Origin: Scyliorhinus canicula
Taxonomy: Eukaryota
Direction: 5' to 3'
Assembly: GCF_902713615.1 (NCBI RefSeq)
Contig: NC_052158.1
Coordinates: 19,588,546-19,652,545, forward strand
Length of the DNA: 64,000 nt
The position numbers were made by a program, and so were the translations under genes. The notes under the pieces were generated by a model that was not told the DNA's origin, made no database searches, and saw only the letters and a program-made list of their open reading frames with translations. Positions 804 through 62,893 of the stretch are shown one piece after another (the first letter of the stretch is position 1; every line of letters begins with the position of its first letter).

Positions 804-877
804 AAGACATTCAGGCTGATGAGAACCTGTCACATTGAGGCTTGGAGCTCTCGGTCTCCCTTTATTGTGGTTTCTAT
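804..877 (-). CDS. Exon 9: start of cytoplasmic tail
   Basis: 74 nt, acceptor ttcaccaccaacag|, donor CTT|gtaagt (phase 0); YRNHNKGRPR basic stop-transfer right after TM5. Confidence 0.7.
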
Positions 878-3800
878 CTGTTGGTGGTGAACGTACAGAT
901 GCAATGAGTTGTAACAATGACAAAATGAACAGAGCAGAGGGTTTCAATAAAGAGATTATTAAAATACCGGCCCATATATCCTTTATGGCAATAGAGAGTG
1001 TGAAAATTGAAAGAGGAGGCACTGGAAAGGCTGGCTATGCTTCGGCTAGGTAAGTCACCTAGTCTGGATGATTTACATCACAGCTTCCTGAAGGAAGTGG
1101 GGATACCTGTAGTGGGAGAACTTCCCTTGATTTTTTTTATCTTTCCCAGATATGAAATAAATGTCACAGGAATCAAGAACGGTAAGAAGTGTGTCAGAAT
1201 AGTCCTAAAAACTACAGGCCAGTTAGTCCAATATCAGTGGTGAGTAAGGTTGTGGAATCTATAAAACAGAAGAAAAAAAAAATCAACAGGCACTTGGAAA
1301 AGTGGAGTTAATTAAGGAGAATCAGCATTGGTTTCTTAAAGGTCGATCATGCTTGACTAATCTGACTGAATATTTTATAATAATCTTTATTAGTGGCACA
1401 AGTAGGCTCACATTAACACGCCAATGAAGTTACTGTGAAAATCCCCCCGTCTCCACACTCTGGCACCTGTTCAGATACAAAGAGGGGGAGAATTCAGAAT
1501 GTCAATTTACCGAACAAACACGTCTTTCGAGACTTGTGGGAGGAAACTGGAGCACCCGGAGGAAACCCACGCAGACACGGGGAGAAGGTGCAGGCTCCGC
1601 ACAGACTGTGACCCAAGCCGGGAATCGAACTTGGGTCCCTGGCGCTGTGAAGCAACAGTGCTAACCACTGTGCTACCACAGAGAAGGTTTGATGAAATAC
1701 ATGTGGTGGATATTGTCTGCATAGATTTTAAGAACGAGTTTGACAAGGTATCACATAAAAGGTTGCTTAACAATGTTGGCACTCATTGAATAAAAGGATC
1801 AGTATGCAATTGGATTTTAAAAATTGGCTTTTGGACAGAACACAGGAAGTCTTGGCAGCTAGTTGTTCTCTGACTGGAGGCTGGTAGTCAGTGGGGCCCC
1901 CCAGTGCTTGGTGCACTGTTTCTTTATTATATGTTAATGACTTATATCTTGGAATACAGTGTAAACATTTAAACTATTTTGGCAGAAGGGAAAGGTGGGG
2001 GAAATTCAGATTTAATGGCACAATTCGTAAGAGTGTGCAGGAGCACAGGGACCTTACATGCAATGATCTTTGAATGTGGCAGGATATATTGAGCAGGTAG
2101 CTCGCAAGGCATAGAAAATAGAAAATCGCTTATTGTCACAAGTAGGCTTCAAATGAAGTTACTGTGAAAAGCCCCTAGTCGCCACATTCTGGCGCCTGTT
2201 CGGGGAGGCTGTTACGGGAATTGAACCGTGCTGCTGGCCTGCCTTGGTCTGCTTTCAAAGCCAGCGATTTAGCCCTGTGCTAAACAGCCCCTTTGGCATA
2301 TGGCATCACCATGGGTTTCCTACAGGGAGGCAAAAGCAGGGAGGTTATACTGAACCTAGATGAAGCTATGGATAAGGCCCGAACTAGAATACTGCATCCA
2401 CATTGTTATAACCCACAAGGGTATTATGGGGTAGGGTTGATTAACTACCCCGTGGATCTTGCAGAATATGAGCTCCCCCAATAAGGGGGCGGGGGCCCTG
2501 CACAATACTTGGCTTTGTATAAATAGTCAGCCAGTAAGGCACCAACTGGAGAAGATGGTGTAGGGAACTATTGGAGCTGTCTTTAATAGCTGTTGTAAAA
2601 TAAAGGGTGGGAATTTTCAACACCGCCCGCCCGGAGACCGGAAATTCTCGCCCGAGGTCAACAGACCGTCACATGGTCCCCGTCCCGAACCGTCCGTGGC
2701 AATTTTGCAACTGGCGCGGCCGAAAAATCCAGCCCAAAGTAAGTTTTTGTTTGGACCTGCTCGGTGTGGACCCTTCATTGCTCTTACAAAATGCCCTTTG
2801 GGATATATGTCATAACCTTGCACAACCATCAAATCTGCCCTCCATCCCGTTCCTCAAAGCAGAACCGCAGCCTTTCCAACATAATATTATCATGAAGATT
2901 CCCAATGCCAGGAACCATTCTAGTAACTCTCCTCTGCACCTTCTGCCACCATCGCAGGCTCAGATCAGTTAGATTAAAATAAACTCCCATTTGACGATGG
3001 TACACGGAGTAAGTGACACAGGCTGTTTAGCACAGGGCTAAATCGCTGGCTTTGAAAGCAGACCAGCAGCACGGTTCGATTCCCGTACCAGCCTCCCCGA
3101 ACAGGCGCCGGAATGTGGCGACTAGGGGCTTTTCACAGTAACTTCATTGAAGCCTACTCGTGACAATAAGCGATTTTCATTTCATATTTATATACAGAAT
3201 TTCTATAGCTTCAAACATCCTGACACTGAGCTAACTTTAGAAAAGGCAGACTCTCTTTTAGCATAGATGTTACGTCCTGCTAGTTTTGTGTTCTTCATAA
3301 CCCAGCACCCATAACCCCTCCCCCACTCCGGATAGGATGTTTCCTCCCCCTGCCACACCTCCTGGAGCAATTTTCATCCTCACCAACATGCCATTCCTCC
3401 CCCCCCCCTCCCTGTTCTTCACCTCTTCCCCCCCTTATCTCTCTCTTTCCCTCCCAGGCTGCTCAGAATCTGGGGCTGGCTGGACCCCGAGGTGATGGTG
3501 TAGTTCTCTCTAGGGTGGATATGGGTGAGGAGGTCCCCGAGATTAAACGAAAGGGAAAATGCTGGAAAATCTCAGCTAGTCTGGCAGCATCTGTAGGGAG
3601 AGAAAAGAGTTAACGTTTCGAGTCCGATGACTCTTTGCCAAAACTCTGAGATTAAGGTGTGGTGTAGGTTGTGTATAAAAGAGAATAAAGCCCGCGGCAG
3701 GAGGTGAACAGGATGATATGATTTAGCATGAATGATATAATTTACACTACTGTTGTGGCGGAGAGTGTGGGAAGTCAAAACATCCAGTCATTCAAAGCTC

Positions 3801-6800
3801 TTTGCACCCATTACAACAGTTCTGATACAACTTGTTACCACATCAACATTACTTACATAGGATGTAAACTGTAAACACGATAAAAGATAAAATGAATGGC
3901 ACCATCACAGCAAGAATTAGAGTTGCTTGTAGATTGTCTGCTGGCCCACATTCATTATCTGCAATAGATATCACCGTATAAACACATAAATTGCAGTTCT
4001 AATTTGCACATTACTTAAGACTCATGATAGTATAGTTAAAACAATTATGGTGTAACATATATTGTACGACTATATACAACACACAGTTCATTCAAAAAAA
4101 TCAATAGGAAGGTTGATATATAATATAATTAACTATACCTGTTACATGAAGAGAATTGATTGTGCAAAATGCACAGCATCAGAATATGCATTGTTAGTCT
4201 GTTGCCAAAATAGGAACTAGGTTCATTCTGACAGGAATAGATTTACTTAAATCACTGATTGTATCTTAGCCTCGGAAAGTAACAAGCGTCTGGAACAAGT
4301 TTGTTCCTTTTAAGATGGAGTATTTTTTCCCACTTGGAAAAACCCTGAAGGAACCCATGGGGACGATCCAATTGATCTGCCCATGGAAGCCGTGGAATAC
4401 GAGCTTCCTCATTAATGGGCGGAGGCCCATCAGCTAGGGTTTATAGAATCAATCATTAACAGCTGGCCCGATGTGCTGTCTGCTGCGTTGCTGCCTTATC
4501 CTTTGGCTGAAAATAAACGGCTGTTTTGATTCTCCTTCCTGGGGCACCTGAACTGTTGTAACACTCAATATCCTTCCCACCTCACGTCAACGATGGCTCA
4601 GAAGGTTGAAATGCCAACTTCACAGAATCACAGAATTGTCATGGGCGCAGAAGGAGGCCATTTGGCCCATCGTGTCTGCACCGGCTCTCCAACTGAGCCG
4701 AGTGTCCTTCCCCTATATTTTACCTTTTGAACAAATTACTGAGTGGCCTGCAGACAGCACTCGGAACCTCTTCTTTTCCTTTTTGCTGGACACTAGCTCT
4801 AAAAATGAAGCCTCTAAACTTTAGAAGTCCTTTATTGCAGCCCTCAAATTTCCTTTATTTGCCAAACTTAAACGATCCAATCGTCTGAAATGCAGAAACT
4901 GGAATGATTGGGTCTCCTCTGACTTTCCTTTGGGGATGTGAGTAACTCTAGTCTCTCTATTCTTGAAATGGCTGAGGGAGCGACCGAAAAAGTCTTTAAA
5001 ATTACAACAGGTTTTCATGGATAAATGGCTCAAACTGTTGGGAAGAGGGAAGAGTAAACTAGAGGCCAGCAATATAAAATAGTCACCATGAAATCAAATA
5101 GGGAATTGATAAAAAACCTTTCACCATACTGTGGAGAGAATGCAAAACATAATACCGTGCAAGCACAAGTAAGCATCGATGCAAATAATATTAGTCCATC
5201 ATAGAATTTACAGTGCAGAAGGAGGCCATTCGGCCCATCGAGTCTGCACTGGCTCTTGGAAAGAGCACCCTACACCCAAGGTCAACACCTCCCCCTATCC
5301 CCATAACCCAGTAACCCCACCCAACACTCAGGGCAATTTTGGGCACTACGGGCAATTTATCATGGCCAATCCACCTAACCTGCACATCTTTGGACTGTGG
5401 GAGGAAACCGGAGCACCCGGAGGAAACCCACGCAGAGAAGGGGAGGATGTGCAGACTCCGCACAGACAGTGACCCAAGCCGGAATCGAACCTGGGACCCT
5501 GGAGCTGTGAAGCCATTGTGCTATCCACAATGCTACCGTGCTGCCCCTAAGGGAATGTTGAGTTAAACATATCAGCCGGAATTCTCTGCTGCCGCCGGCA
5601 ACCGGGCCCGCAGGCTTCCCGACGGCATGGGGTGACTTCAATGGGAAATCCGATTGACAAGCAGCGGGAATGGAGAGTCCTGCCGCCAGCGAACGGCGTG
5701 CTGCCGAGGCTGAGGAACTGGAGAATCCAGCCATGACAGGGAAAGGAAGGGTTAGGTCATAACATTTTATGGGCAGCATGGCAGCACAGTTGTTAGCACA
5801 GTTGCTTCACAGCTCCAGGGTCCCAGGTTCAATTCCCGGCTTGGCGCACTGTCTGTGTGGAGTCTGCACCTTCTCCCCATGTCCGCGTGGGTTTCCTCCG
5901 GGTGCTCCAGTTTCCTCCCACAGTCCAAAGATGTGCAGGTTAGGTGGATTGTCCGTGTTAAATTGCCCTTAGTGTCCAAATAGGTTAGGTGCGGTTACGG
6001 GGATAGAGTAGAGGTGTGGGGTGTTCTTTCCAAGGGTCGGTGCAGACTAAAGGGGCCGAATGGCCTCCTTCTGCACTGTAAATTCTATGTCCATGTCCAT
6101 AACAGTTAACTAAGAAGGGATGAAGGGAAGTGTGAGAAGAGAATTCATATTGGAATGGACTTTTTGGAGCCCCATGGTCTGTCTGCGCACTGTATTCTCA
6201 AAGTCATTAGAGGTATTCATTTTAAAATTGTCACTCAAGTAAAATGGCATTTTAAGAGAAATTTATTTCCACAGGATAAAATGCTTTACCACAGGGAGCG
6301 GTTCAAATGGGAACCATTTAATTTAATAAAGGAAATTTGGACAAATATTTGAAACGGAGAGCTCAACAGGGCTGTGAGGAGACAGCAGAGCAGAGTGATT
6401 AGATTCAGATTGATTCAACAAAGTTTACAGGAAACATCAATCTTTGATTTGACAAAAGTGACTGCGCCATTAGCTCTCCTAATCAGATTACTAATGAGAC
6501 GTCACTTTCAGAATTTACTTTCAGTCCAAAGATGTGCTCGGTGGATTGGCCGTGATCAATGCGCGGAGAAATGGGGCGGGGGAGTTGGCCGAGGTAGAGT
6601 GGTCTTTCGGAGGATCGGTGAAGACTCGAGAAGGTCAAACGCCTTCATTCTGCACTGTAGGGATTCAATGGTCTCATTAATTTGCTGGCGACAATTTTAC
6701 CATTGAAGACTCACCAGCTCGATCCTTTAATTTCACAATCAGGAATATTGAGGCACACAACACACTGATTGAACCGGATGTAGTTACTTCACCCATTCCC

Positions 6801-9063
6801 TTCAGACAGCAAACTGGCAACAAATAAAACACAGTTACAGAGTGAACACATTACAAACACCTCGCATACCAGGAGGTTATTGGATCATCTGGGTGCAGTA
6901 AACGCAGGAAAATAGGCAGGAAAAATCTACATCCTGAATAGTCTGCCAGATATTCTATCCATTTAAAATCAGAGAGAAAATCATAATCTTGCTTATGGAT
7001 GTTTACACCTCTCTGCCCAATTTTTCTGTATTTGGTATGCCTGGATGGTCCAATACTCCCAAGAGCAGAAATGTATTCTCTTTGTCTTCCTCTACCGAGC
7101 TTGTGGTCCTAATCTAAGTGTGTGGCTGACCCTGGCATTAATTCATTGTCAGACTGTTCCCTCGTTCAGTATTTATTTCAAAACAATTAGCATTTGGACC
7201 ATCGTATCTCAACTGGTGATGGCCTCATCATTTAGAACTGACAGCCTAGAAATGCTAGTTCTCCTTTTTGCCCCTTCTAGTCCCCCAAGTTCCAATCCTG
7301 GGATGTGGTGGACAACAGACATTAGAAGAACACAACAACTAGGAGCAGGAGTAGGCCATCTGGGCCCTCGAGCCTGCTCCACCATTCAATGAGATCATGG
7401 CTGATCTTTTGTGGACTCAGCTCCACTTTCCAGCCTGAGTACCATAACCCTTAATCCCTTTATTCTTCAAAAAACTATCTTTATCTTAAAAACATTTTAT
7501 GAAGGAGCCTCAACTGCTTCACTGGGCAAGGAATTCCATAGATTCACAACCCTTTGGGTGAAGAAGTTCCTCCTAAACTCACTCCTAAATCTACTTCCCC
7601 TTATTTTGAGGCTATGGCCCCTAGTTCTGCTTTCACCCGCCAGTGGAAACAACCTGCCCGCATCTATCCTATCTATTCCCTTCATAATTTTATATGTTTC
7701 TATAAGATTCCCCCCGTATCCTTCTAAATTCCAACTTCCCTAGCCATCTTTTTTACCACTCTGGGATGCATTCCATCTGAGCCAGGAGACCTGTCTACCT
7801 TTAGCCCCATTAGCTTGCCCATCACTACCTCCTTAGTGATAACAATCATCTCAAGGTCCTCACCTGTCATAGCCTCATTTCCATCAGTCACTGGCATGTT
7901 ATTTGTGTCTTCCACTGTGAAGACCGACCCAAAAAACCTGTTCAGTTCCTCAGCCATTTCCTCATCTCCCATTGTTAAATCTCCCTTCTCATCCTCTAAA
8001 GCAGTGCTTCTCAAAGTGTGGTACGCGTACCGGTGCCGGTACACGAGCCATCGTCTGCCGGTATGTGGAGTACTCCCAGAAAAGAAACACTTTCACATTT
8101 GATACAGCGCAAAGGTGAGTGCTGAGCTGGGGGGGGGGAGGTTGCGTCCTCGGGCCGTGCTGGGGGGTTGCGTCCTCGGGCCGTGCTGGGGGGTTGCGTC
8201 CTCGGGCCGTGCTGGGGGATTGCGTCCTCGGGCCGTGCTGGGGGATTGCGTCCTCGGGCCGTGCTGGGGGATTGCGTCCTCGGGACGTGCTGGGGGATTG
8301 CGTCCTCGGGCCGTGCTGGGGGATTGCGTCCTCGGGACGTGCTGGGGGATTGCGTCCTCGGGCCGTGCTGGGGGATTGCGTCCTCGGGCCGTGCTGGGGG
8401 ATTGCGTCCTCGGGCCGTGCTGGGGGATTGCGTCCTCGGGCTGAGCTGATGGGGGGGGTTGCGTCCTCGGGCTGAGCTGATGGGGGGGGTTGCGTCCTCG
8501 GGCCGAGCTGATGGGGGGGTTGCATCCTCGGGCCGTGCTGAGGGGGGGTTGCGTCCTCGGGCCGAGCTGATGGGGGGGTTGCATCCTCGGGCCGTGCTGA
8601 GGGGGAGTTGCGTCCTCAGGCCGTGCTGAGGGGGGGTTGCGTCCTCAGGCCGTGCTGAGGGGGAGTTGCGTCCTCGGGCCGTGCTGGGGGGGATTTGCGT
8701 CCCCGGGCCGTGCTGGGGGGGGATTTGCGTCCCCGGGCCGTGCTGGGGGGGATTTGCGTCCCCGGGCCGTGCTGGGGAGGGGGGGGGGGTGCGTCCTCGG
8801 GCCGTGCTGGGGAGGGGGGGGGGGGGGGGGTGCGTCCTCGGGCCGTGCTGGGAGGGAGGGGGGGGGGGGGGGTGCGTCCTCGGGCCGTGCTGGGGGGGAG
8901 GAGGGGGGGGGGGGGTGCGTCCTCGGGCCGTGCTGGGGGGGGGGGGGTGCGTCCTCAGGCCGTGCTGGGGGGGGGTTGCGTCCTCAGGCCGTGCTGGGGG
9001 GGGGGGGGTTGCGTCCTCAGGCCGTGCTGGGGGGGGGGGGGGGTTGCGTCCTCGGGCCGTGCT

Positions 9064-9106
<43 letters not shown>

Positions 9107-12100
9107 GCATCCTCGGGCCGTGCTGGGAGGGGGGGGTGCGTCCTCAGGCCGTGCTGGGGGGGGGGTTGCGTCCTCAGGCCGTGCTGGGGGGGGGGGGGGT
9201 GAGTAGGCCGTGCTGGGGGGGGGGGGGGGGGTTGCATCCTCGGGCCGTGCTGGGGGGGGGTTGCATCCTCGGGCCGTGCTGGGGGGGGGGGGGGGGGGTT
9301 GCATCCCTCGGGCCGTGCTGGGGGGGGGGGGGGGGGTTGCATCCCTCGGACCGTGCTGGGGGGGGGGGGTTGCATCCCTCGGACCGTGCTGGGGGGGGGG
9401 GGGGGGTTGTATCCTCGGGCCGTGCTGGGGGGGGGGGGGTTGCATCCTCGGGCCATGCTGGGAAGGCTGTATCCTCGGGCCGTGCTGGGGTTGGGGGGGG
9501 GGGGGAGGTTGCGTCCTTGGGCCGTGCTGAGGGGGGGTTCCGTCCTCGGGCCGTGCTGACGGGGGGGTGCCTGAATCCTCGGGCCGTGCTGAGCGGGGGC
9601 GGGGGGGGGGGCTGCATCCTCGGGCCGTGCTGAGCGGGGGGGGTTGCGTCCTCGGGCCGTGCTGGGGGGGGGTTGCATCCTCGGGCCGTGCTGGGGGGGG
9701 GGGGTTGCATCCTCGGGCCGTGCTGGGGTGGGGGGGTGGGGGGGGGGGAGGTTGCGGCCTTGGGCCGTGCTGAGGGGGGGGGGGGGGGTTGCGTCCTCGG
9801 GCCGTGCTGAGCCCGGGGGGGTGATCTCAATTCACTGGCCCATCCCTCTTCCACTGGAAAATGCACAGCTATAAAAATGAAAGAAATATTACATTATCTC
9901 AGCTGGTAAAACTGCACTGACAATGTGACTTGTTTATATCTTGATAATGAATATTTAGAGTGAAAACATTGATTCCCTTTGGTTTCAGACATGATAACAG
10001 CTGAATGAGAGATAGCAGCTTCAACACTAAAATTTGTTCTTGCTTTCGCTGTTCCTGTCTCCCTCCCCCACTTATCCATTCCCCTCCCTCTCTTATTCTG
10101 TGTCTTCCTCCCTTTCTCTCTCTCTCTCTCGCACTCCTCACCCCCCCCCCCCCCCCCTCCCAGCCACTTCTTCACCCTGTGTTAAGTGAGTCCCAATTTA
10201 CTGCCTTGGTTCGTGCGTTTTGTGAATCTTGGATAGACAAACAGTGGTCCATTCCTACAGTGTGTTCTCTCACTACAGAAATAATAGGTCAGAAAAAAGG
10301 GAAAATGTCCATGCCATTCCACTGAAACCCGTAATGTTAGGTTGCTAATTACCTCTACAATAATTCAAGTGAACAGGTCTTGTGCTTGTTGGTGAATCAA
10401 TCACCTTCAAATTCTGGATTAAACACAAAGGTACCTTGCACAGTTTGGCCACATTTCAAATATTTCATGTTCTTCTATGGCTCAATAAAAACAAAATAGA
10501 TCTGAGTTTAAACAATCATTAGCAAACAGAGTTTTCTTTGAAGAAAGGAAAGAAGTATTGGGCGCATTTCAAAAGCTTCCAATAAAATGAAAGTGAATGT
10601 AGAAATATCATACATTCAACATTCTTCGCACATTAACACTGAAATGCCTGTTGCCTCAGTTGATATTCCTTTTGTCTCTGAATCAAAAGTTTCTAATTGG
10701 GGGAGAAGTTAGACAGCAGTTCAGTCTGCCGTCTGGGACGTGCTTCAACAAGACTTCCAAATAAATGATGTGTACACTTATCTCCTTGTTTTTGACAACT
10801 TGTGCACAAAATGGCGGTCATGCTTGTCCTTCAGAGTACCACGTTGCATTTGACATGCTTTAATATCCCAAATTTACAGATGGCAAAGCGAGGCCCAATG
10901 GACATGTTTATCAAACCAAGACATCCAGTTGCTGAACACACAAATAATTCTGAAGCAGATGACAACGATGTAATTGAAACCGAAGTGTTGCCGGCAAAAA
11001 GAGTTCGTACTAGCTTTACTCAGAAATATGAGTCCTCATACATTCAATTCGGTTTTGTAGCCACAAATGATGCGGGAGTGCAAAAACCGCAGTGTGTTAT
11101 TTGTGGAGATGTGTTGGGTAATGACTCAATGAAGCCGTCAAACCTCAAAAGACATTTAAATACGCAACATAAAGAAATGAGTTCAAAGTCGAAAGAGTTC
11201 TTTGAAAGAAAGCATGTTGATTTAAAAGGCTGTCAGAAACAGATCTTTGAAGTGTCACACACAAATACTTGTGCTTTGCGGGCTTCTTATAAAGTAGCAC
11301 TTCGAATTGCTAAAGCTAAAAAGCCATACACAATTGGTGAGATGCTAGTGATAGGCTGTATTAAAGATGTTTGCATAGAAGTACTGGGTGAGCCGGCAGC
11401 AAGGAAAGTGGCTCAGGTTCCACTTTCAAATTACACTATAGCTCGACCAATTTACGATCTGGCACACGATATGGAAGATCAGCTCATAGGACAGATTAAA
11501 TTAGCAAAGTACTTTTCTTTGCAGCTTGGTGAATGTACAGATGTTGCTAATCAGGCAGTTCTGATGGTGTATGTGCGCTTTGAACATGAGGGTGATTTGA
11601 AAGAAGAGTTTTTTTTCTCTTCTTCACTACCAACAAAAACAACTAGTTCTGAAGTGTTCAAGACTGTGAGGGACTACATCGTTAACAAATGTGGGTTGGA
11701 TTTCAAGTTTTGTGTAGGCGTATGTACTTATGGTGCTGCCACAATGATAGGACGGCATTCAGGAATGGTTGCCCAGATCAAGGCGCTTGCCCCAGAATGT
11801 AAGTCAACACACTGCTTCCTTCACCGAGAAAGTCTTGCAACAAAAAAAATGTCAACAGAACTAAATAGTGTGCTCAGTGAGGTTGTAAAAATTGTGAACC
11901 ATGTAAAAGCAAATGCTTTAAATTCGAGACTCTTCACTGCATTATGTAATGATATGGGGGCGGATCATAAACAGCTCCTGTTGCATGCCGTTGTACGTTG
12001 GTTATCAAGGGGAAAAGTTTTGTCAAGGGTATTTGAGCTACGTAACGAACTTGCCGTGTTTCTTGAGGACAAAAAACCAAATTTGTCACAAATGTTCCGA

Positions 12101-15100
12101 GATGTGGATTGGCTACCCAAGCTGGCTTATTTGGCTGATATCTTTGCCATCTTTAATGATCTCAACACCTCCATGCAAGGAAGGATGGCATCGTGTTTTA
12201 CAATGGCGGACAAGATCGATGGCAAAAACGGAAGCTAGAAGCATGGAAGAATCGAGTGTCAAGAGATTGTTATGACATGTTTCACCAATTGGCAACGGTC
12301 ATCGCCGATGCAGGCGAAGACCTTAAAGTTGTAACTCTACGAAATGTTATCAAAGAACACTTGCTTAATTTGGTAGATCGTTTTCAGCATTACTTTCCAG
12401 CAGAAGAAGATCCACGGAAAGGGACTGGATGGATCCGAAATCCGTTTCTGCCACTGAGAGATGACATGGTCTTAAGTGTCACTATGGAGGATAAATTGTT
12501 GGAGCTGGCTGCTGACGAAGGATTGAAGATAAGTTTCGAAACTTCAACATCATTTGCTTCCTTTTGGATAAAGTGAAAGCAGAATATCCTGAGCTTAGTG
12601 AAATTGCTCTGAAAACTCTTCTCCCTTTTCCTTCAACATACCTCTGCGAGACTGGCATCTCAACAATGAGTGTCATTAAGACAAAATACAGGAATTGTAT
12701 GGATATTCATTCTCCATTGCGAGTGGCACTGTCCTCAATTGAACCACGATTGGATAAGCTGACAAATAAGCAGGCTCACCCTTCACATTAGTAAAGGTTA
12801 AGGTTTTGACATGCCTATTATTGTGTTAATAAAATAATCATCAATTTCATATTTTGGTATTACGACATATTTTCAAGGTTATGTCTTCAATTTAATGATA
12901 CCTATTCTTTGTTCACAAAATCAATATAAAATAAAAACATATGTCAACTTACTTTTATTATATATCCATTATATTTGCAATAATATAATATAATGTAATA
13001 TAATTGCCCCTGCAATAAGATATATCTCAAAAAAATTTCTGGGAGTTCACATCCCCCCCCCCCCCCGAACCCCCAACGGATTGGCTTGTTTCGCTCACCG
13101 GTCCCTGGCACATTGGGAAAAAAACTGCCGGTACGCCACATCAGATATTTTGAGAAGCACTGCTCTAAAGGACCAATATTTACCTGAGCCACTCCTTTTT
13201 GTTTTATATATTTGTCAAAACATTTACTATCTGTTTTTATATTCTGAGTAAGTTTACTCTCATAATCTATCTTACTCTTCTTTATAGCTTTTTTAGTAGC
13301 TTTCTGTTGCCCCCTAAAGATTTCCCAGTCCTCTATTTTCCCACTAATCTTTGCCACTTGTATACTTTTTCCTTCAATTTGATACTCTCCCTTATTTCCT
13401 TAGATATCCATGGCCGATTTCCCTCTTTCTACCGTCCTTTTGTTTTGTTGGTATAAACCTTTGCTGAGCACTGAAAAATCGCTTGGAAGGTTCTCCACTG
13501 TTCCTCAACTGTTTCACCATAAAGTCTTTGCTCCCAGTCTACCTCTTCTCTCATCCCATTGTAATCTCCTTTGTTTAAGCACAAAACACGTGTGATTTTA
13601 CCTTCTCATCCTCTATCTGTATTTTAAATTCCACCATATTGTGATCGCTCCTTCCGAGAGGATCCCTAACTATGAGATCATTAATCAATCCTGTCTCATT
13701 ACACAGGACAAGATCTAGGACCGCTTGTTCCCTCATAGGTTGCATTACATACTGTTGTAGGAAACCATCGCGGATACATTCTATAAACTCCTCCTCAAGG
13801 CTTCCTTGACCGACCTGGTTAAACCAATCGACATGTAGATTAAAATCCCCCATGCATGCATGCATCCTTTATTTCTTTGTTTAATGCCTGCCCCACCATA
13901 ATGTTACTATTTGGTGGCCGATAGACTACTCCTATCAGTGACTTTTTCGCCTTACTATTCCAGATTTCCACCCAAATGGATTCAACCTTATCCTCCATAG
14001 CACAGATGTCATCCTTTACTATTGCCCGGATGTCATCCTTAAATAACAGAGCTACATCACCTCTCTTACCATCCACTCTGTCCTTCCGAATAGTTTGATA
14101 TCCGTGGATATTTAACTCCCAGTCATGACTATCCTTTAACCATGTTTCAGTAATGGCCACTAAATCATAGTCATTCACTATGATTTTCACCATCAACTCA
14201 TTTACCTTATTCCGAATACTACGAGCATTCAGGTAAAGTACACTTATGGTGGCTTTTGTACCGCCGTTTTGAATCTTGACAGCTTGATCAGTAACCTCTC
14301 CCAAGTTACCTTTCCTCTTAACTTTTCTCCTAATTTTCCTTGTTGTTGAGCTCATATCTTCATGTAACAACCTGCCGCGTTGCTTTCCATTTATGTTTTT
14401 ACTTCCCAATTTATTCCTTTTAGTATTACTGGGCCTATTCACTGAGCTCTCAGTCATTGTACTTTGTACTGTCGCCCTTTTTGATTTTTGACTATGGCTT
14501 CTCTGCCTTACACTTTCCCCCTTACTGCCTTTTGTTTCTGTCCCTGTTTTACTCCCTTCCGACTTCCTGCATCGGTTCCCATCCCCCTGCCACATTAGTT
14601 TAAACACTCCCCAACCGCTCTAGCAAATAGCCCCCCTAGGACATCGGTTCCAGTCCTGCCCAGGTGTAACACGTCCAGTTTGCACACCTCCCCCAGAACC
14701 GGTCCCAATGTCCCAGGAATCTCAAACCCTCCCCCTGACACCATCCCTTCAGCCAGTATTCATCCTATATATCCTGTCATTTCTACTCTGATTAGCATGT
14801 GGCACCGGTAGTAATCCTGAGATCACTACCTTCGAGGTCCGATTTCTTAACTTCCTTCCTAGCTCCCTGTATTCTGCTTTTAGGACCTCATCCCTTTTTT
14901 ACCTATGTTGTTTGTACCGATGTGTACCACGACCACTGGCTGTTCACCCTCCCCCTCCAGAATATCCTGTACCCGCTCCGAGACATCCTTGACCCTAGCA
15001 CCAGGGAGGCATCATACCATCCAGGAGTCTCATTTGCGGCCACAGAAATGCCTGTTTATTCCCCTTATAATTGAATTCCCTATAACTATTGCACTGTCAC

Positions 15101-33100: not shown

Positions 33101-36100
33101 CACTGTCTGTGCTGAGTCTGCACGTTCCCCCCTTTTCTACGTGGTTTCCTCCGGGTGCTCCGGTTTCCACCCACAAGTCCCGAAAGACGTGCTGTTAGGT
33201 GAATTGGACATTCTGAATTCTCTCTCAGTGTACCCCAACAGGCGCCGAATGCGACAATTAGGGACTTTTCACAGTAAATTCATTGCAGTGCTAATGTAAC
33301 CTACTTGTGACACTAATAAAGATTATTATTATTATTATTATTATTATTAACATTCATGGTGCCCCGAGGAACCTTCTTTGCCCAATGCTGTACCCAGCCA
33401 GCCCTCTGTCCAGCATCCTCCCCCAACAGCTCCTATTCCTCCTTCACCCCCTGCCCTCTTTCTAACAAGCTGACCTCTTCCAGGGCCTCACTGTCTCTAG
33501 ATTCACACCACTCTGGCCATCCTATGGGATGCACAGCAGACCACCACATTGACCAAGACTCTTGCAGGAGACTATTGGAGGGAGCCAGCTGCCCAAGTCC
33601 AGGCAGCGAAACAACAGCTGTAGAATGACCTGCACAACGTTTGCTCTCCTGAACAGGTGATACAGGTTGTGTTGCCTCTGGCTGCTGCTCCTATAGAGGG
33701 GTGAGTTTTTAATTCTGTCATGGTAAAGCCAGCATTCTGTACCCATCCCTAATTGCCCTCGGAGGTGATGGCGAGTTGCCTTCTGGAAACGCTGCAGTCC
33801 ATCTGGTTGTGAGGTGGGAGGTGTCACGTTATGGACACAGCGACGGTGAAGGTACAGCGATAAGTCAGGACGGTGAAGGTACAGCGATAAGTCAGGACGG
33901 TGAATAACGTGGAGGGAAACTTACAGGCAGTAGTGTTCCCTTGCATTGGCTGTCCTTATCCATCTAGGTAATAGAAGTCATGGATTTTGAAGATGCTGCC
34001 AAACCAGGTTTAGTAAGTCACGGCGTTGCATCTGGTTGGTGGTACACACGGCTGCCATCACGTTTCAGTAGTAAGGGCAGCACGCTGGCGCAGTGGTTAG
34101 CACTGTTTCATCATGGCTTCGAGGTTCCAGGTTCGATCCCGGCTCTGGGTCACTGTCCGTGTGAGGTTTGCACATTCTCCCCATGTTTGCGTGGGTTTCG
34201 TCCCCACAGCCCAAAGATGTGCAGGTTAGATGGATTGGCCACACTAAATTGCCCCTTAATTGGAAAAATTTAATTGGATACTCGAAATTTACATTAAAAA
34301 AACTTTTTTTTCATGTTTCAGTGGTGGAGGGGTGAATATTTAAAGCGGTTGATGGGATGTTGATCAAGCCCAGTTTCCTGGCTGGTGTCCAGCTTCTTGG
34401 GTGCTGTCAGAGCTGAACTCATTCACATAAGTGTTGACTATTCCATCACACTCCTTTTAAAAAAAAAAAAAAAATTTGAAGTACTGAATTCTTTTTTTTT
34501 CCCCAATTGAGGGACAATTTAGCGTGGTCAAATCACCTCCCTGCACATCTTTGGGTTGTGGGGGTGAGACCCACGCAGACACGGGGAGAATATGCAAACT
34601 CCACACGGACAGTGACCCAGGATCGGGATCGAACCCGGATCCTTAACGCCATGAGGCAGCAATGCTAATCACTGTGCCACCGTGCTTCCCTTTATTGATA
34701 CAGCAGGTCATTGGTGACCCCATGAATGTCAGAATCTTCAACATGTGCGGTTCAGCAAATGTAATGTAAGAGCAGCAGCTAGCGTTGAAACTTCAAAAAG
34801 CAGAACCACAAAGCTTATCTCAATTGTTGTCGTTTCAATTATTTTCTGATTGGATCAGAGGTTCTGTTTAATTTTGAATGAACAGAAATACGACAGATTT
34901 GCCTGGTGGGATAATCCAGAACAAGAAGAATGTGTTGACGCTGGCATCAACGGGCCTCCAGGCCCAGCCGTTCTTCCCTTCCTTGGGGGCTAGCACGGCA
35001 CCAGAGTGCTGTGCGCTGCTCCGGCGCCGCAAGCCAGCCCCACATGGCCGGCGCGGGTCCGCGAATACGAGGCACAGATGGCACGGGTACGCGCAAGCGT
35101 GCTATGGCCGTTTCCGCACCGGTGCCCCGGGCAACATGGCGGAGACCGACAGTGGCCCGGCATGGAGGAACATAGACCCCCCCCCCCCCGGAATGAGACC
35201 GCCCGCCAATTGGTTGCCCCCGATCGCGGGCCTGACCACCGTGGAGGCCCCCCCCCCCCCCCCCCCGGCCGAGTCGGCACCCCCCCGCCCACCAGGACGG
35301 CACCCACAGCCAGAACGCTGATGTCCCGCCGGGTAGGACCATACGTGAACGACGCCGGCAGGACTCAGCGAAAATCGGCAGGCACTCAGCCCGTCGAGCG
35401 CGGAGAATCGGCGACCACGCCTGCGCGATCGCTGCCGATTCTCTTGTCGCCGGAGAATCGGCGGCCCGGCGTCGGAGCGGCATGGCGGGATTCGCGCGCC
35501 CCCCCGGCGATTTTCCGACCCGGAGAATCCCGCCCAATATCTTAAAATTAGAGCAAAACCATTCTGCACTGAAATCCGTGAACATTTTAGCCTTCTGCAC
35601 AGAGAATAATGAAATTCTACCGTCCGGGGCCATGGCTGCTGTGTCAATTAGAAGTGGTGATTGGAATTTGTAATACAGGGGGTCCTCAGACTTGAGATAC
35701 GATTGGTTCCTCAAAACCATGTCGGAACTTTAGAACCAATTTTCCCAGAGGAACAATGTCAAAAATGGGTGATTGGTTTGTGAACACGTTAATGTCCAGT
35801 TCTTCAGGCTTTTTGGCACCCAGATCTATAATATTTCTCTTCATTCAAAACTAAACTGAATATCTGCTCCAATCAGAAAATAATTTAAATAACGATTGAG
35901 ATAAGCTTTGTGGTAAACCACTTGTCTGAAGTTATGGGTCAACCAACAAGTCATTATTGGAGATTAGGGGCAGCACGGTGGCGCAGTGGGTTAGCACTGC
36001 GGCCTCACGGCGCCGAGGTCCCAGGTTCGATCCCGGCTCTGGGTCACTGTCCGTGTGGAGTTTGCACATTCTCCCCGTGTTTGCGTGGGTTTCGCCCCCA

Positions 36101-37845
36101 CAACCCAAAAATGTGCAAGATAGGTGGATTGGCCACGCTAAATTGCCCCTTAATTGGAAAAAATGAAGTGGGTACTCTAATTTTTTTTTTAATTATTGGA
36201 GATTAAACTACAGGGCTATGCTGGGACATGAGTCTAGCGCAGTGCTCGGATATTTATTGTGCTCATGCTCTCGGTGTAAGTAAACTAGGCACACAAAACT
36301 AAGACAGATAGCACAGCCTCCCCCATTCCACTGTCCCCTGTCTGTCTCCATACCTCTGTCCTGCAAGGCTACATTTCTACCACCAAAATCAGTGGGATGC
36401 TTTTCTGCGTCTGCCCGAACTGAGATCAATAGATTTTTCTATTAGGTAGTAGATCTGGGAGATAATTAGAAAAACAGGTAAATGCAGGGAAGGTGCAGAT
36501 TAACCACGATTTAATAGAATAACATAACCGGGCTTGAGGGGATGGAATCGAATGTTTGTGTTCCTATTCCGTGGCTGTTCTGAAGTAGGGAAGTTAATAA
36601 GCTGAAACGTTTGTCATTTCCAACGTGATAAAGTATTGAAGGCACTTACCAATGAGTTTCAAATCTGTACTCCATTTCCAATGTCCATTCACAATGGTAT
36701 AAACCCCTTGGTCAATGGGTTTTAAATTGTTTATCATCAGAGACCCATTGGATGTAAAATATCGCAAACGTGATTTGAAGTTTTGATTTGGTTCCTCTGG
36801 TTGGTTACCTGGTGCATAATCCAAAATAGTAAACCGGTTTCCATCACTGCCAGTAAACTCCCATTCAACACTGTCACTCAGATCAGCTCCACGTTCAGGA
36901 TCCAGTAAAACTGATGAACCAATGACACCAAAAACTTCTTTTCTTCCATCTGATTAACAGAAAATGTATTCTTTTAACTTATGGCAGTAAAACACAGAAC
37001 TACAATTTTAAAAACTATGAAGAAAAGCAACAGCAAATGCTGAAGAGGCTCCACTCCCCCATGTGTCACCTCAGGAATGGGACCGGGGCGGCAGCATGGT
37101 GGCGCAGAGGTTAGCACTGCTGCCCCATGGCACCAGGGTCCCAGGTTCGATCCCGGCTCTGGGTCACTGTCCGTGTGGAGTTTGCACATTCTCCCAGTGT
37201 CTGCGTGGGTTTCACCCCCCACAACCCAAAGATGTGCAGGGTAGGCGGATTGGCCACGCTAAATTGCCCCTTAATTGGAAAAAAAAATGAATTGGGTGCT
37301 CGAAGTTTAAAGAAAAAGGAATGGGACAGGGGGACTGACACATCTCTCTCTCAGGAGGTCGGAAGGCAGTGAGAAGAGTAAGGAAAGTGGCTGCATCGGG
37401 GGGTGGAGGGGGGTGGGGGGGAGGGGTGTGGGGGGTGGGGGGGGGAGGGGGGTGGGGGGGTGGGGGGAGGGGGGGAGGGGGGGAGGGGGGTGGGGGGGAG
37501 GGGGGGAGGGGGGTGGGGGGGAGGGGGGAGGGGGGGAGGGGGGTGGGGGGGAGGGGGGGGAGGGGGGGGGGGGAGGGGNNNNNNNNNNNNNNNNNNNNNN
37601 NNNNNNNNNNNNNNNNNNNNNNNNNNNNNNNNNNNNNNNNNNNNNNNNNNNNNNNNNNNNNNNNNNNNNNNNNNNNNNNNNNNNNNNNNNNNNNNNNNNN
37701 NNNNNNNNNNNNNNNTGGAGGGGGTGGGTGGGAGGTGTGTGGGGTGGGGGGGGAGGCAGGGAAACGTTAACAAACTTGGAACAGAGAAAAAGGAGAATGC
37801 AGGCGGAAGACGGGAGGGCCGGCTGGGTTTTTTTTTTCCTCTGCA

Positions 37846-37881
<36 letters not shown>

Positions 37882-43800: not shown

Positions 43801-45029
43801 CACTGCAGGGACCTGACCAACTCGCGGAGCCGGGGGGGGGGGTCTCACATTCCCGACCTCCCCACACCGGGGGGGGGGAACTCGCATTCCCGACCTCCCC
43901 ACACGGGGGGGGAAACTCGCATTCCCGATCTCCCCACACCGGGGGGGCATTCCCGACCTCCCCACACCGGGGGGGGGGCATTCCCGACCTCCCCACACCG
44001 GGGGGGGGGGGCATTCCCGACCTCCCCACACCGGGGGGGGCATTCCCGACCTCCCCACACCGGGGGGGGGGGGCATTCCCGACCTCCCCACACCGGGGGG
44101 GGGGCATTCCCGACCTCCCCACACCGGGGGGGGGGGGGGGCATTCCCGACCTCCCCACACCGGGGGGGGGGGGGGGACTCGCATTCCCGACCTCCCCACA
44201 CCGGGGGGGCATTCCCGACCTCCCCACACCGGGGGGGGGGGACTCGCATTCCCGACCTCCCCACACCGGGGGGGGGCATTCCCGACCTCCCCACACCGGG
44301 GGGGCATTCCCGACCTCCCCACACGGGGGGGGGGGGCATTCCCGACCTCCCCACACCGGGGGGGGGCATTCCCGACCTCCCCACACCGGGGGGGGGGACT
44401 CGCATTCCCGACCTCCCCACACCGGGGGGGCATTCCCGACCTCCCCACACCGGGGGGGCATTCCCGACCTCCCCACACCGGGGGGGGGGGGGCATTCCCG
44501 ACCTCCCCACCCCGGGGGGGGGGGGGAACTCGCATTCCCGACCTCCCCACACCGGGGGGGGAACTCGCATTCCCGACCTCCCCACACCGGGGGGGGAAAC
44601 TCGCATTCCCGATCTCCCCACACCGGGGGGCATTCCCGACCTCCCCACACCGGGGGGGGGGCATTCCCGACCTCCCCACACCGGGGGGGGGGGGCATTCC
44701 CGACCTCCCCACACCGGGGGGGGGGGGGAAACTCGCATTCCCGACCTCCCCACACCGGGGGGGGGGGGAAACTCGCATTCCCGACCTCCCCACACCGGGG
44801 GGGGAAACTCGCATTCCCGATCTCCCCACACCGGGGGGGCATTCCCGACCTCCGATCCCCTGCCCCACCCCATTTGAAGACCACCCCCACCCCCCCACCC
44901 CCCAGTCACTAATTTACCTGCTTCACCGAGAGTCCTGGGTCCGAGGAAGCCCAGAGGCTGCAACAGGGGGAGGGCGAAGAGAAGAACCGAACGCGCCAAT
45001 CGAGAATTCATCGAGAATTGTCGCCACAT
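804..45029 (-). CDS. Spliced gene model (9 exons, 3' end incomplete): IgSF receptor, signal peptide + IgV + IgC2 + 5 TM + cytoplasmic tail
   Basis: Exons 44918-45029, 36650-36949, 20374-20637, 19358-19465, 19092-19175, 16741-16851, 6715-6813, 3857-3958, 804-877 join through GT-AG junctions (first eight junctions phase 1) into 1254 nt / 418 codons with no stop: MWRQFSMNSRLARSVLLFALPLLQPLGFLGPRTLGEA-DGRKEVFGVIGSSVLL...DQGVYTIVNGHWKWSTDLKLI-EPLSVPLINST...CQV...W...DCGMYTC...SIY-GFPRLHYYTKQLAIVALITAVVALICKAISVFKDST-SLQLLKTLLQVVQFASLIALSGYWIWIE-GPHRNNVLLLVFFCLLEIPFALSISGGNWLIKNLKAN-LCCLKGMGEVTTSGSISVLCASIFLIVKLKDRA-DNECGPADNLQATLILAVMVPFILSFIVFTVYIL-YRNHNKGRPRAPSLNVTGSHQPECL. Confidence 0.8.
1377..1679 (-). 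mobile_element. V-SINE with GTGACAATAAAG(ATT)n-type tail
   Basis: V core followed by ...cagtaacttcattg...cctacttgtgccactaataaagattattat. Related copies at 33025-33350 and 52980-53255. Confidence 0.8.
2113..2291 (-). mobile_element. Short tRNA-derived SINE (~180 bp, no V core)
   Basis: GGGGCTGTTTAGCACAGGGCT...GGTTCAATTCCC head, tail gcctacttgtgacaataagcgattttc. Copies at 3021-3185, 41133-41315, 63851-64000. Confidence 0.8.
2404..2788 (+). mobile_element. Solo LTR with an internal MITE
   Basis: TG...CA termini, TATAAATA, AATAAA, imperfect 4-bp flanks acat/aaat; shares sequence with 4335-4563. Confidence 0.6.
2605..2735. mobile_element. PIF/Harbinger-type MITE
   Basis: Termini gggtgggaattttc / gaaaaatccagccc, 3-bp TSD AAA. 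Related GC-rich MITEs at about 5576-5735, 30040-30625, 31535-31705, 34955-35535, 39262-39400. Confidence 0.6.
3300..3655. mobile_element. Penelope-like element fragment
   Basis: gaaaatgctggaaaatctcag...ctggcagcatctgtagggagagaaaagag...gtttcgagtc block, recurring at 55077-55210. Family assignment from recalled shark repeats. Confidence 0.45.
3857..3958 (-). CDS. Exon 8: extracellular loop with Cys + TM5
   Basis: 102 nt, acceptor tatctattgcag|, donor TAT|gtaagt; DNECGPADNLQ-ATLILAVMVPFILSFIVFTVYIL. Confidence 0.82.
4335..4563 (+). mobile_element. Solo LTR (related to 2404-2788)
   Basis: Shared block gaatacgagcttcctc..taatgggcggagg, AATAAA, ends tgttgtaaca. Confidence 0.5.
5197..5547 (-). mobile_element. 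V-SINE with CR1-type tail
   Basis: Tail gatgggccgaatggcctccttctgcactgtaaattctatg. Similar copies at 5771-6089, 17589-17910, 38715-39055, 42660-42950, 50155-50497, 51550-51845, 55545-55862. Confidence 0.85.
6715..6813 (-). CDS. Exon 7: TM4
   Basis: 99 nt, acceptor tgtgttttatttgttgccag|, donor CTG|gtgagt; LCCLKG...SGSISVLCASIFLIVKL. Confidence 0.78.
8137..9815 (+). repeat. Subterminal minisatellite of the hAT, ~52 units TTGCGTCCTCGGGCCGTGCTG(G)n
   Basis: Counted by eye; constant ~21-nt core with variable poly-G spacers. Confidence 0.95.
10880..12791 (+). pseudogene. Inactivated hAT transposase (ZBED5/Buster-like)
   Basis: BED finger PQCVICGDVL..SMKPSNLKRHLNTQH, CxxH HCFLHRE, VRWLSRG, YLCETG. 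Catalytic Asp positions read LQLGECTD and VCTYGA. -1 frameshifts near 12230 and 12570. Confidence 0.9.
15879..16136 (-). mobile_element. V-SINE, A-rich tail, 17-bp TSD
   Basis: TSD ACTTTCACTAGAAAACT at 15862-15878 and 16137-16153. Confidence 0.9.
16741..16851 (-). CDS. Exon 6: TM3
   Basis: 111 nt, acceptor ctttgttttcttttaatag|, donor ACC|gtaagt; VLLLVFFCLLEIPFALSI. Confidence 0.8.
18122..18345. repeat. 46-bp tandem repeat, ~5 copies
   Basis: gcagaaacatgcacggcctgattggctgtgcgtgcagatgtcctgc at 18122, 18168, 18214, 18260, 18306. Confidence 0.95.
19092..19175 (-). CDS. Exon 5: TM2
   Basis: 84 nt, acceptor ttattgttccag|, weaker donor AAG|gtactt keeps phase 1; LLQVVQFASLIALSGYWIWI. Confidence 0.65.
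19358..19465 (-). CDS. Exon 4: TM1
   Basis: 108 nt, acceptor gttttctatttcag|, donor CAA|gtaaga; LAIVALITAVVALICKAISVF. Confidence 0.85.
19694..20068 (-). mobile_element. Solo LTR, 375 bp
   Basis: 5-bp TSD TGTAC (19689-19693, 20069-20073); minus-strand TATAAAA and AATAAA; ends gtaacaaaaca. Confidence 0.8.
20374..20637 (-). CDS. Exon 3: IgC2/I-set domain
   Basis: 264 nt, acceptor ctccctccctctcccacag|, donor TATG|gtgagt. EPLSVPLI start, LACQV, IVWMKDG, SDCGMYTCTVENSVS. Confidence 0.92.
20737..20835 (+). mobile_element. Internally deleted V-SINE
   Basis: Head joined directly to the A-rich tail; TSD AACAAGAAC (20724-20732, 20836-20844). Confidence 0.65.
20900..21150 (+). mobile_element. L2 LINE ORF2 C-terminal remnant
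   Basis: NITRLCPYFS, YSNA, LQLICNSAA, SPVTPVFTSLH resemble L2 C-terminal motifs. Confidence 0.55.
21960..25338 (-). mobile_element. Tx1-clade LINE remnant (CCHC ORF1, APE, linker), RT region missing
   Basis: CHTCGKTGH knuckle; VILGGGFN..SRIDFLF; FFFQK.HRE; SMSESMR joined through a SINE to AKNWEKRL..SIVGKNLVIR. Confidence 0.8.
23195..23730 (+). mobile_element. tRNA-derived SINE with gggcaataaatgctg tail (V-SINE inserted at 23306-23515)
   Basis: Head with ggtttgaatcc B box; tail shared with the LINE at 54700-56085. A related head lies on the minus strand at ~57790-58030. Confidence 0.5.
25340..27990 (-). mobile_element. Degenerate L1/Tx1-clade ORF2 (RT to 3' end) with two V-SINE insertions
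   Basis: YRPISLLNVDTK, QGCP, YVDDLL, LAGRVQAVKMNVLP; SINE at 26585 with TSD GACTTAGG. Confidence 0.8.
28353..29860 (-). mobile_element. Solo LTR interrupted by a 5'-truncated L1
   Basis: Minus-strand start tgtagccatctaagg resembles the LTR start at 40067. Left boundary is approximate. Confidence 0.65.
28605..29269 (-). mobile_element. 5'-truncated L1/Tx1 copy
   Basis: ANHAHMFWAC..WQPFLDFLAQR*, poly-A, TSD ACAATAACCTATACTT (28589-28604, 29270-29285). Confidence 0.9.
30690..31070 (-). mobile_element. Tx1 LINE 3' fragment
   Basis: LLVNLPLGLAKLAI..SLEREHVVSTGTIEAF..APQGL, typical of the Tx1 ORF2 terminus. Confidence 0.65.
31150..33020 (+). mobile_element. Decayed CR1 endonuclease region containing a MITE and a minisatellite
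   Basis: YVNAWS..NK, ILETW, GEEFLMCVQE, LDLAL. Confidence 0.55.
31741..32574. repeat. 59-bp minisatellite, ~14 copies
   Basis: catctccatgtcatggctaccatctacaccacaatgtgcccacccctgtccaacgccat; period seen as a one-base shift per 60-nt line. Confidence 0.95.
36650..36949 (-). CDS. Exon 2: IgV-type N-terminal domain without cysteines
   Basis: 300 nt, acceptor tttctgttaatcag|, donor ATTG|gtaagt. Motifs EVFGVIGSSVLL, VEWEF, RLRYFTSNGSLMINNL, DQGVYTI typical of CD2/SLAM/CEACAM N-domains. Confidence 0.9.
37380..37935. other. G-rich low-complexity tract with assembly gap (N 37579-37715)
   Basis: 137 N flanked by G runs. Confidence 0.95.
40067..41891 (+). mobile_element. Solo LTR (ERV/Gypsy-like) inserted into a V-SINE, carrying three SINEs
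   Basis: TG...CA, TSD GGAG (40063-40066, 41892-41895), TATAAAA at ~40497. Host SINE halves at 39945-40066 and 41892-41998. Confidence 0.85.
43132..43831. repeat. Inverted duplication: perfect 154-bp arms 43336-43489 / 43678-43831 plus a mirrored copy of the array
   Basis: Arms checked base by base; 188-bp spacer. Confidence 0.95.
43845..44860 (+). repeat. Minisatellite, 31 units GCATTCCCGACCTCCCCACACC(G)n
   Basis: Counted by eye; ends ~57 nt inside intron 1. Confidence 0.95.
44918..45029 (-). CDS. Exon 1: signal peptide
   Basis: ATG at 45029-45027 (second in-frame ATG 45011). Basic n-region, hydrophobic core SVLLFALPLLQPLGFL, ends LGEA. Donor GCAG|gtaaat, phase 1, matching the IgV exon. 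Confidence 0.75.
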
Positions 45030-62717: not shown

Positions 62718-62893
62718 AAAAATGTGTATTTGTTGCTCACCCATAGGACACCCAAGGCACTTCCTAGCCTATAAATTGGAAGAACTGCAACCTCTCTTGT
62801 TCAATGGGCAAACAGTGGGAATTTGTGCACAGTAATATCCCATAAAACAGAAGATCAATAGTCATTGAACCTACTGTGATAGTTTACGTTGAA

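Follow-up and report, generated by a model that had tools for sequence, protein, structure and literature searches.

A gene on the minus strand of a 64,000-nucleotide (nt) window of Scyliorhinus canicula NC_052158.1 (45029 to 804; all coordinates are positions in this window, the whole stretch of DNA that was analysed) probably encodes a CD2/CEACAM-type V-C2 immunoglobulin (Ig) ectodomain tethered on an orphan body of five transmembrane (TM) helices, a design like that of CD47, and belongs to an elasmobranch family. The catshark gene is real, expressed, and protein-coding. As judged by sequence comparison, its relatives form a large and fast-diverging gene family with dozens of paralogues, the members found here being restricted to sharks, rays, skates, and sawfish. 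The membrane module has no detectable relative and constitutes a separate family.

Nine exons (E1 to E9; Table 1) splice into a 418-amino-acid (aa) reading frame without a stop, up to a donor at 803, in the order signal peptide, Cys-less V-type Ig domain, C2-type Ig domain, five hydrophobic helices, and basic tail. All acceptors consist of a pyrimidine tract followed by AG, and all donors are GT, mostly GTAAGT or GTGAGT, with GTACTT at E5. Each of the nine exons starts at phase 1, and every exon is of phase 1-1. The joined frame is identical to residues 1 to 418 of isoform X1 (449 aa, P0151) of the S. canicula RefSeq protein "hepatocyte cell adhesion molecule-like," which confirms to the residue the in-frame join of nine small exons proposed in an earlier reading of the DNA letters (hereafter, the sequence-only reading). 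The end of isoform X1 is encoded by a tenth coding exon, ~11.2 kb beyond the window start. RefSeq has a second isoform, X2 (413 aa, P0001; 100% identical over the V exon in a HMMER scan), which skips E4 and, with it, TM1. The sequence-only reading had described the gene as hidden, its open reading frames (ORFs) showing only fragments; the ORF track does show fragments only, but a RefSeq annotation with two isoforms exists. That reading had also considered that the protein might be an already characterised annotated orthologue; it is annotated, as HEPACAM-like, but not characterised. The RefSeq name derives from automatic similarity, and the gene is thus annotated, misnamed, and uncharacterised. 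No second gene was found, either in the window or in the 10 kb that flank the gene on each side.

The only run of N in the window lies in intron 1. It hides no coding exon, because the end of E1 and the start of E2 share the same phase, because orthologues align across the E1/E2 boundary without extra residues, and because a 1303-nt RNA contig carries 430 nt upstream of E3, equal to E2 (300 nt) plus E1 (112 nt) plus 18 nt. Three hydrophobic ORFs (6289 to 6414, 5033 to 5269, and 744 to 1034) were considered as TM exons and ruled out by phase, stop codons, and RefSeq. Separately, the frame upstream of the E9 acceptor (878 to 962, minus strand) is open and hydrophobic, reads ILIISLLKPSALFILSLLQLIASV, and looks vaguely like TM5; it is absent from the transcripts and proteins seen and could be a relic or due to chance.

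Public RNA data show that the gene is transcribed and spliced. The word share of E3 was 0.86 to 1.0 in 14 runs labelled "RNA?" and 0.95 in 4 runs of unknown kind. RNA contigs mapped on 18780 to 20720 yielded GT..AG joints between E3 and E4 (19463/20372; 4 runs) and between E4 and E5 (19173/19356; 3 runs), and no E3-E5 joint was present among the RNA contigs of four runs. Moreover, loose ends of RNA contigs match the initial 30 nt of E6 and the final 30 nt of E2, and the 1303-nt contig reaches 415 nt past E5. Over the mapped region, RNA coverage was confined to exons, except for one piece of intron 3 (19735 to 19925). Farther downstream, E8 together with its flanking introns, a stretch of which 43% is exon, had a word share of 0.39 in 14 RNA runs. 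Because this is the value expected from the exon alone, E8 is present in RNA as an exon only, without its introns. For the junctions E1-E2, E6-E7, E7-E8, and E8-E9, support comes from the RefSeq model, the length of contigs, and conservation in orthologues. Transcripts ending after exon 4, an outcome considered in the sequence-only reading, are thus at odds with contigs that run from E2 to E6 and with E8 in 14 runs, though the later junctions are seen only indirectly. As for the piece of intron 3, its RNA contigs are deeper than those over the exons and have foreign flanks, with loose ends that match nothing nearby, and no ORF was found in it on either strand; this RNA probably stems from a repeat transcribed elsewhere.

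By hydropathy, the protein has a signal peptide and five hydrophobic segments, and the AlphaFold2 (AF2) helices span residues 228 to 257, 261 to 289, 293 to 313, 317 to 361, and 367 to 399. Charge is basic in the TM3-TM4 loop and the tail and mixed or acidic in the TM4-TM5 loop, which carries D/E residues. In 16 family members, the second inner loop (ICL2) holds 3.7 K/R versus 1.3 D/E, and the first outer loop (ECL1) holds 0.2 K/R versus 1.6 D/E. These loop charges fit the predicted topology of five spans, N-out and C-in. Hydropathy, modelled helices, and loop charges therefore agree with the five-pass, N-out body with basic inner loop and tail, and with D/E in the TM4-TM5 loop, that had been proposed from the DNA letters, and both predictors return five spans where fewer than four had been considered. 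The linker to TM1 reads GFPRLHYYT, and the helix bundle follows only ~four residues after the C2 domain. Conserved features of the module are the L-H-x-Y-T linker, a Ser in TM4, the loop motif K-G-C-E-P (N-E-C-G-P in the catshark gene), and a Trp that is invariant at the outer end of TM2 and precedes x-x-[EK]-G. The five TM exons are kept in frame across sharks and rays, together with the invariant Trp and the loop motifs. The tail comprises ~55 residues, its sole tyrosine lies at the membrane edge, and it holds no immunoreceptor tyrosine-based switch motif (ITSM) or inhibitory motif (ITIM).

The ectodomain was compared with domain, sequence, and structure collections. In Pfam, E2 matched V-set (4.3e-8) and Receptor_2B4 (1.4e-3), with weak 2B4/SLAM matches, and E3 matched I-set (5.2e-14). 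E3 also matched V-set_CD47 with 22.5 bits, compared to 52.5 bits for I-set; because it scores far below I-set, the V-set_CD47 match is considered generic. A family profile searched against PDB sequences found CEA/CEACAM1 across both domains (E, 2e-36 to 3e-25), as well as CD2 and CD48. Similarly, Foldseek with the full AF2 model (predicted local distance difference test score [pLDDT], 66) retrieved CD2 (1hng; 0.72), CD48 (2dru; 0.69), NTB-A (2if7; 0.68), and CEACAM1 (~0.6). Pfam, the PDB profile, and the fold overlaps thus agree on the CD2/SLAM/CEACAM-like two-Ig ectodomain recognised in the sequence-only reading, and by these comparisons the ectodomain is predicted to be a V-C2 pair of that type whose V domain has no disulfide.

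None of the families that share this ectodomain has the body of the catshark protein. CD2/SLAM proteins (CD2, CD48, CD58, 2B4, and NTB-A) likewise pair a V domain that lacks a disulfide with a C2 domain after it; however, they are single-pass or glycosylphosphatidylinositol (GPI) linked, and SLAM receptors signal through the tyrosines of ITSMs (TxYxxV/I), whereas the catshark protein has five spans and no tyrosine motif. CEACAMs, whose N domain (V-like, no disulfide) and C2 domains match the family profile, are single-pass or GPI-linked proteins of bony vertebrates without a multi-pass module. HEPACAM/GlialCAM shares the V plus C2 ectodomain, with generic Ig similarity only; it is a single-pass type I protein with a long tail, in contrast to the five spans and shorter tail found here. 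The HEPACAM name reflects the V-C2 ectodomain only.

A profile of the shark TM region matched 48 fetched proteins (isoforms included). Additional proteins of rays, skates, and sawfish have a related V domain and four to five hydrophobic segments, some up to twelve; HMMER with the shark TM profile misses the ray members, and hhalign links them to the shark module (probability, 95.4%; E, 1.7e-8). All named members are elasmobranch, including sharks of the genera Scyliorhinus, Mustelus, Carcharodon, Cetorhinus, Rhincodon, Stegostoma, Chiloscyllium, Hemiscyllium, Heterodontus, Heptranchias, and Pristiophorus and rays, skates, and sawfish of the genera Hypanus, Hemitrygon, Mobula, Amblyraja, and Pristis, with several paralogues on one chromosome per species. 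Members carry one to three Ig domains, arranged as V, V-C2, V-V-C2, V-C2-C2, or V-V; the V-only members P0088, P0054, P0045, and P0015 comprise 310 to 375 aa. Their automatic names (HEPACAM-like, CEACAM1-like, CD48-like, CD276 homolog, contactin-6-like, and VEGFR2-like) are uninformative because they vary widely among members. Full-text literature searches for shark CD47-like or multi-pass Ig superfamily proteins returned nothing on this elasmobranch family. The earlier description of a poorly described cartilaginous-fish system stands with respect to the literature, but the gene is not a singleton, having dozens of elasmobranch paralogues. Four ray relatives of 740 to 940 aa (P0003, P0013, P0176, and P0177, of Hypanus and Hemitrygon) have 9 to 12 hydrophobic segments; these could be annotation fusions of tandem genes or real double modules.

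Beyond the family, searches with the membrane module found no clear relative of it. A word-based protein search with the TM region alone returned close orthologues only, and feature and shape searches of the ESM Atlas for the TM module returned only bacterial transporters and generic bundles. Weak Pfam matches to MARVEL, DUF6526, DUF6814, and CD20 in single members, as well as a Foldseek match to human MLC1 (E, 1.2), were judged to be due to chance. Among AFDB clusters, A0A3Q0GE46 (aligned 249 to 421) and A0A4D9ECI9 (aligned 313 to 493) stood near the top, after the S. torazame orthologue. In both, the helical region after the Ig domains resembles the TM-only model (TM-score by query, 0.61 to 0.64; probability, ~1). 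The two carry the names "Hepatocyte cell adhesion molecule-like" and, for the other, "HEPACAM family member 2"; if they are non-elasmobranch, the Ig plus five-TM family may be older than it looks.

Among known systems, CD47 (integrin-associated protein) and the CD47-like proteins of poxviruses come closest to this design. A structural study of CD47 describes it as the immune system's only 5-TM receptor, unique in fold and without relatives (PMC8410850). As predicted for the catshark protein, CD47 carries an Ig ectodomain directly on a five-helix bundle, spans the membrane N-out and C-in, and has a short tail without tyrosine motifs on small 3' exons. In CD47, a C15-C245 bond joins the Ig domain to the TM4-TM5 loop (PMC8410850), and passages in PMC8410850 and in PMC5440412, the latter citing Rebres et al. 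2001, describe this bond as needed for ligand binding and signalling. The family has a candidate equivalent. Cys202 of the catshark protein, which is spare to the canonical Cys158-Cys207 pair, sits in the E-F turn, where the C2 domain faces the membrane and next to its C-terminal end, with only a very short linker before TM1, and Cys363 lies in the TM4-TM5 loop. Both cysteines are present in ~20 shark genes, and both are replaced in three shark lineages (by Y/W, S/R, and G/F) and in the ray protein P0042. The Ig-motif cysteine alone is absent only in P0154 and in the ray protein P0005, the latter of which has a spare cysteine in another C2 strand. Of the members with V-only or V-V ectodomains, P0054 and P0009 have neither a spare Ig cysteine nor the loop cysteine, and V-only P0088 has a spare cysteine in the A strand of its V domain and keeps the loop cysteine. 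In a maximum-likelihood tree, the three lineages with double losses are separate, each with sisters that keep both cysteines. By our own hypergeometric estimate, which treats lineages as independent, the chance probability of three joint losses, given ~25 genes and four Ig-cysteine losses, is ~0.002. Because the two cysteines covary and were lost together in three independent lineages, there is good comparative evidence for a Cys202-Cys363 disulfide from the Ig domain to the loop.

The family would share with CD47 this predicted bond to the TM4-TM5 loop. Both have a Cys-x-Pro motif within that loop (C-G-P here, C-E-P in the family, and C245-I-P in CD47) and a Gly that is conserved where helix III starts on the outer side, and the V-only members of the family equal CD47 in size and plan. 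On the other hand, the membrane domains of CD47 and the catshark protein have no detectable sequence or fold similarity. CD47 has a single V-type Ig domain with the canonical B-F disulfide, whereas the catshark protein has V plus C2 domains with no cysteine in V; the linker is SWF (RVVSWF) in CD47 and GFPRLHYYT here; the Ig cysteine of the bond lies, in CD47, in the V-domain A strand, and its candidate counterpart in the catshark protein lies in the E-F turn of C2; and CD47 is a single-copy gene, in contrast to a multigene family with variable ectodomains. The TM regions of 26 family members (16 shark and 10 ray or V-only) gave no match to the CD47 TM domain (Pfam PF04549) at E up to 10, and, with the same E limit, three TM-profile searches of PDB sequences found no CD47 chain, including 7MYZ. 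A TM-only AF2 model (pLDDT, 69; predicted template modelling score [pTM], 0.52) retrieved no CD47 by Foldseek in PDB, AFDB Swiss-Prot, AFDB clusters, or BFVD, the matches in PDB, Swiss-Prot, and BFVD being generic helix bundles. VIA-align in wide mode likewise listed no CD47 in its top 50, only generic helix bundles, the packing of the model being uncertain. Profile and fold searches thus agree with the earlier impression, by eye, of no residue-level similarity to CD47. Because HMMER already fails between sharks and rays, and because model packing is uncertain, these negatives are weak and leave room for distant homology.

Two origins were weighed. They are the alternatives posed in the sequence-only reading (divergent CD47 relative or independent fusion), and that choice still frames the question correctly. 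One is true homology, the family being a divergent group of CD47 paralogues or the elasmobranch counterpart of CD47; here an ancestor would have had an Ig domain, five helices, and a disulfide from Ig to the second outer loop (ECL2), CD47 being a reduced V-only descendant or the family its expanded relatives. The common design, the disulfide to the TM4-TM5 loop, Cys-x-Pro, the Gly of helix III, and the small 3' tail exons all speak for this origin, as do the V-only members, which fit the size and plan of CD47 and of which P0088 has its spare cysteine in the A strand, as in CD47; moreover, TM modules diverge so fast that a negative result against CD47 counts for little. Nonetheless, we consider homology unlikely, given that neither PF04549 nor the PDB profile, Foldseek, and VIA-align searches brought up CD47, that the V domain is of the CD2 type without a B-F disulfide, that the SWF linker is absent, and that the Ig cysteine is elsewhere in the fold in most members. 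The other origin, to which we give about an even chance, is independent invention: a CD2/CEACAM-type gene in an elasmobranch ancestor would have gained an unrelated five-helix module by exon shuffling and converged on the disulfide tether. All exons are of phase 1-1, the class that shuffles in frame, and ray genomes also hold short single-pass or GPI-type relatives of the V domain ("CD48-like/CEACAM1-like/HEPACAM2-like"), whose accession numbers, map positions aside, neighbour those of multi-pass members. The lack of a detectable relative of the TM module and the position of the Ig cysteine, different from that in CD47, point in the same direction. However, the donor of the five-helix module was not found, chance would have to account at once for an Ig domain plus exactly five helices, for a disulfide that reaches the same loop, and for Cys-x-Pro, which is much to expect, and the HEPACAM-like matches among AFDB clusters hint at an older origin, if they lie outside sharks.

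Whichever its origin, the preferred reading of a CD2/CEACAM-type ectodomain tethered on a five-helix body suggests how the protein might work. The predicted glycoprotein would begin like a type I membrane protein, with a signal peptide, a V domain, and a C2/I-set domain, and would continue into five helices, each on its own phase 1 exon, and a basic inner tail. The Cys202-Cys363 disulfide, proposed from covariation, would pin the ectodomain onto the helix bundle, as C15-C245 does in CD47. Going by the domain types, the V domain would present the face that binds a ligand on another cell, in either homophilic or heterophilic fashion. Self recognition or leukocyte adhesion, as suggested in the sequence-only reading, may be the function. 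Because no tyrosine motif is present in the tail, the five helices would be there for orientation and for associating laterally with other membrane proteins, and not for direct signalling through the tail.

Several points weigh against this reading. The E6-E7, E7-E8, and E8-E9 junctions have no direct reads in the RNA used here, and the RefSeq models of several species include predicted isoforms that lack a single TM exon (P0001, P0012, P0157, and P0159). Such skips would invert the topology, that of E4 in X2 leaving four spans, and, if abundant, would imply a looser role of the module. Taken further, these two observations would fit a protein whose multi-pass part is not a functional product, the working form being single-pass or shorter and the distal hydrophobic exons being annotation or splicing noise. 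We regard this as very improbable: RNA contigs join E2-E3-E4-E5-E6 with no E3-E5 joint, one contig of 1303 nt extends 415 nt beyond E5, E8 is found in RNA of 14 runs without its introns, and the five TM exons are conserved in sharks and rays. In addition, the hydrophobicity of TM2 and TM4 is moderate (1.58 and 1.70), as is the quality of the AF2 models (pLDDT, 66 to 69; pTM, 0.41 to 0.52). Topology, disulfide, surface expression, and ligand are all inferred, and calling the protein "immune" is a guess from the type of ectodomain.

The remainder of the window consists largely of repeats (Table 1). About 45 copies of a tRNA-headed short interspersed nuclear element with a Deu-type core, GTGGAGTTTGCACATTCTCCCCGTG, are present, e.g., at 17181 to 17440, 26588 to 26751, 35965 to 36130, and 37090 to 37251, with the core at 17282 to 17317. 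The minisatellites create long spurious ORFs on both strands. Intron 6 contains, at 10802 to 12791 on the plus strand, an ORF of at least 478 aa that continues in other frames, is represented by a 637-aa product in the assembly annotation, and has a weak Pfam match to the Spin-doc zinc finger; no transposase domain was found in it. It looks like a domesticated or decaying transposon gene.

Table 1. Exons of the catshark gene and other features of the 64,000-nt window of S. canicula NC_052158.1
Feature	Position	Strand	Description
E1	45029-44918	-	Start codon and signal peptide, 37 codons + 1 nt; donor GTAAAT; hydrophobic segment 11-29; tblastn with P0151 residues 1-38
E2	36949-36650	-	Cys-less V-set Ig domain, CD2/SLAM/CEACAM N-domain type (predicted); exon end is a loose end joined to E3, 4 runs
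E3	20637-20374	-	C2/I-set Ig domain (predicted); canonical Cys158-Cys207, spare Cys202 in D-C-G-x-Y-x-C motif; joint to E4, 4 runs
E4	19465-19358	-	Short linker FPRLHYYT and TM1; RNA joints on both sides; skipped in RefSeq isoform X2 (P0001)
E5	19175-19092	-	TM2, ending with family-invariant Trp (W285), then I-E-G; RNA joint to E4, loose end into E6
E6	16851-16741	-	TM3 and start of basic inner loop (KNLKAN); tblastn 100%; first 30 nt are a loose end after E5, runs X1, X4, X8
E7	6813-6715	-	Rest of inner loop (LCCLK) and TM4; tblastn to P0151 and to S. torazame orthologue (94%)
E8	3958-3857	-	Outer loop ECL2 with Cys363 (NECGPADNLQ) and TM5; word share 0.39 in 14 RNA runs
E9	877-804	-	Basic cytoplasmic tail (YRNHNKGRPR...ECL); donor GTAAGT at 803 to tenth coding exon
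Assembly gap (N)	37579-37715		Only N run; inside intron 1, flanked by G-rich/Pro-coding simple repeats
Minisatellite	8136-9736		G-rich 26-33 bp units (GC 0.72)
Minisatellite	18122-18353		46-bp unit x5
Minisatellite	31725-32574		59-bp unit x14
Minisatellite	43848-44839		28-bp unit x30; just inside intron 1
Minisatellite	62893-63207		20-bp unit x16
LINE (long interspersed nuclear element) fragments	58742-62700, 13840-14607	-	Reverse transcriptase (RVT_1, 2e-18) and endonuclease (Exo_endo_phos) ORFs; upstream of gene, and intron 6

Altogether, these data bring to light dozens of shark and ray genes that appear to follow the plan of CD47 with CD2/SLAM/CEACAM-type ectodomains and an orphan membrane module, proteins whose RefSeq names hide that they belong together and are multi-pass. 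If the family arose independently, it would represent a second solution for holding an Ig domain rigidly on a multi-pass base. If it is homologous, its members would be the missing relatives of CD47, and CD47, the "marker of self," would not be an orphan but the lone, reduced mammalian survivor of an ancient jawed-vertebrate class of disulfide-tethered Ig plus five-helix receptors, to which the HEPACAM-like entries among AFDB clusters might also belong; we hold this last proposal to be improbable as matters stand, and under it the origin of the CD47 system would become testable.

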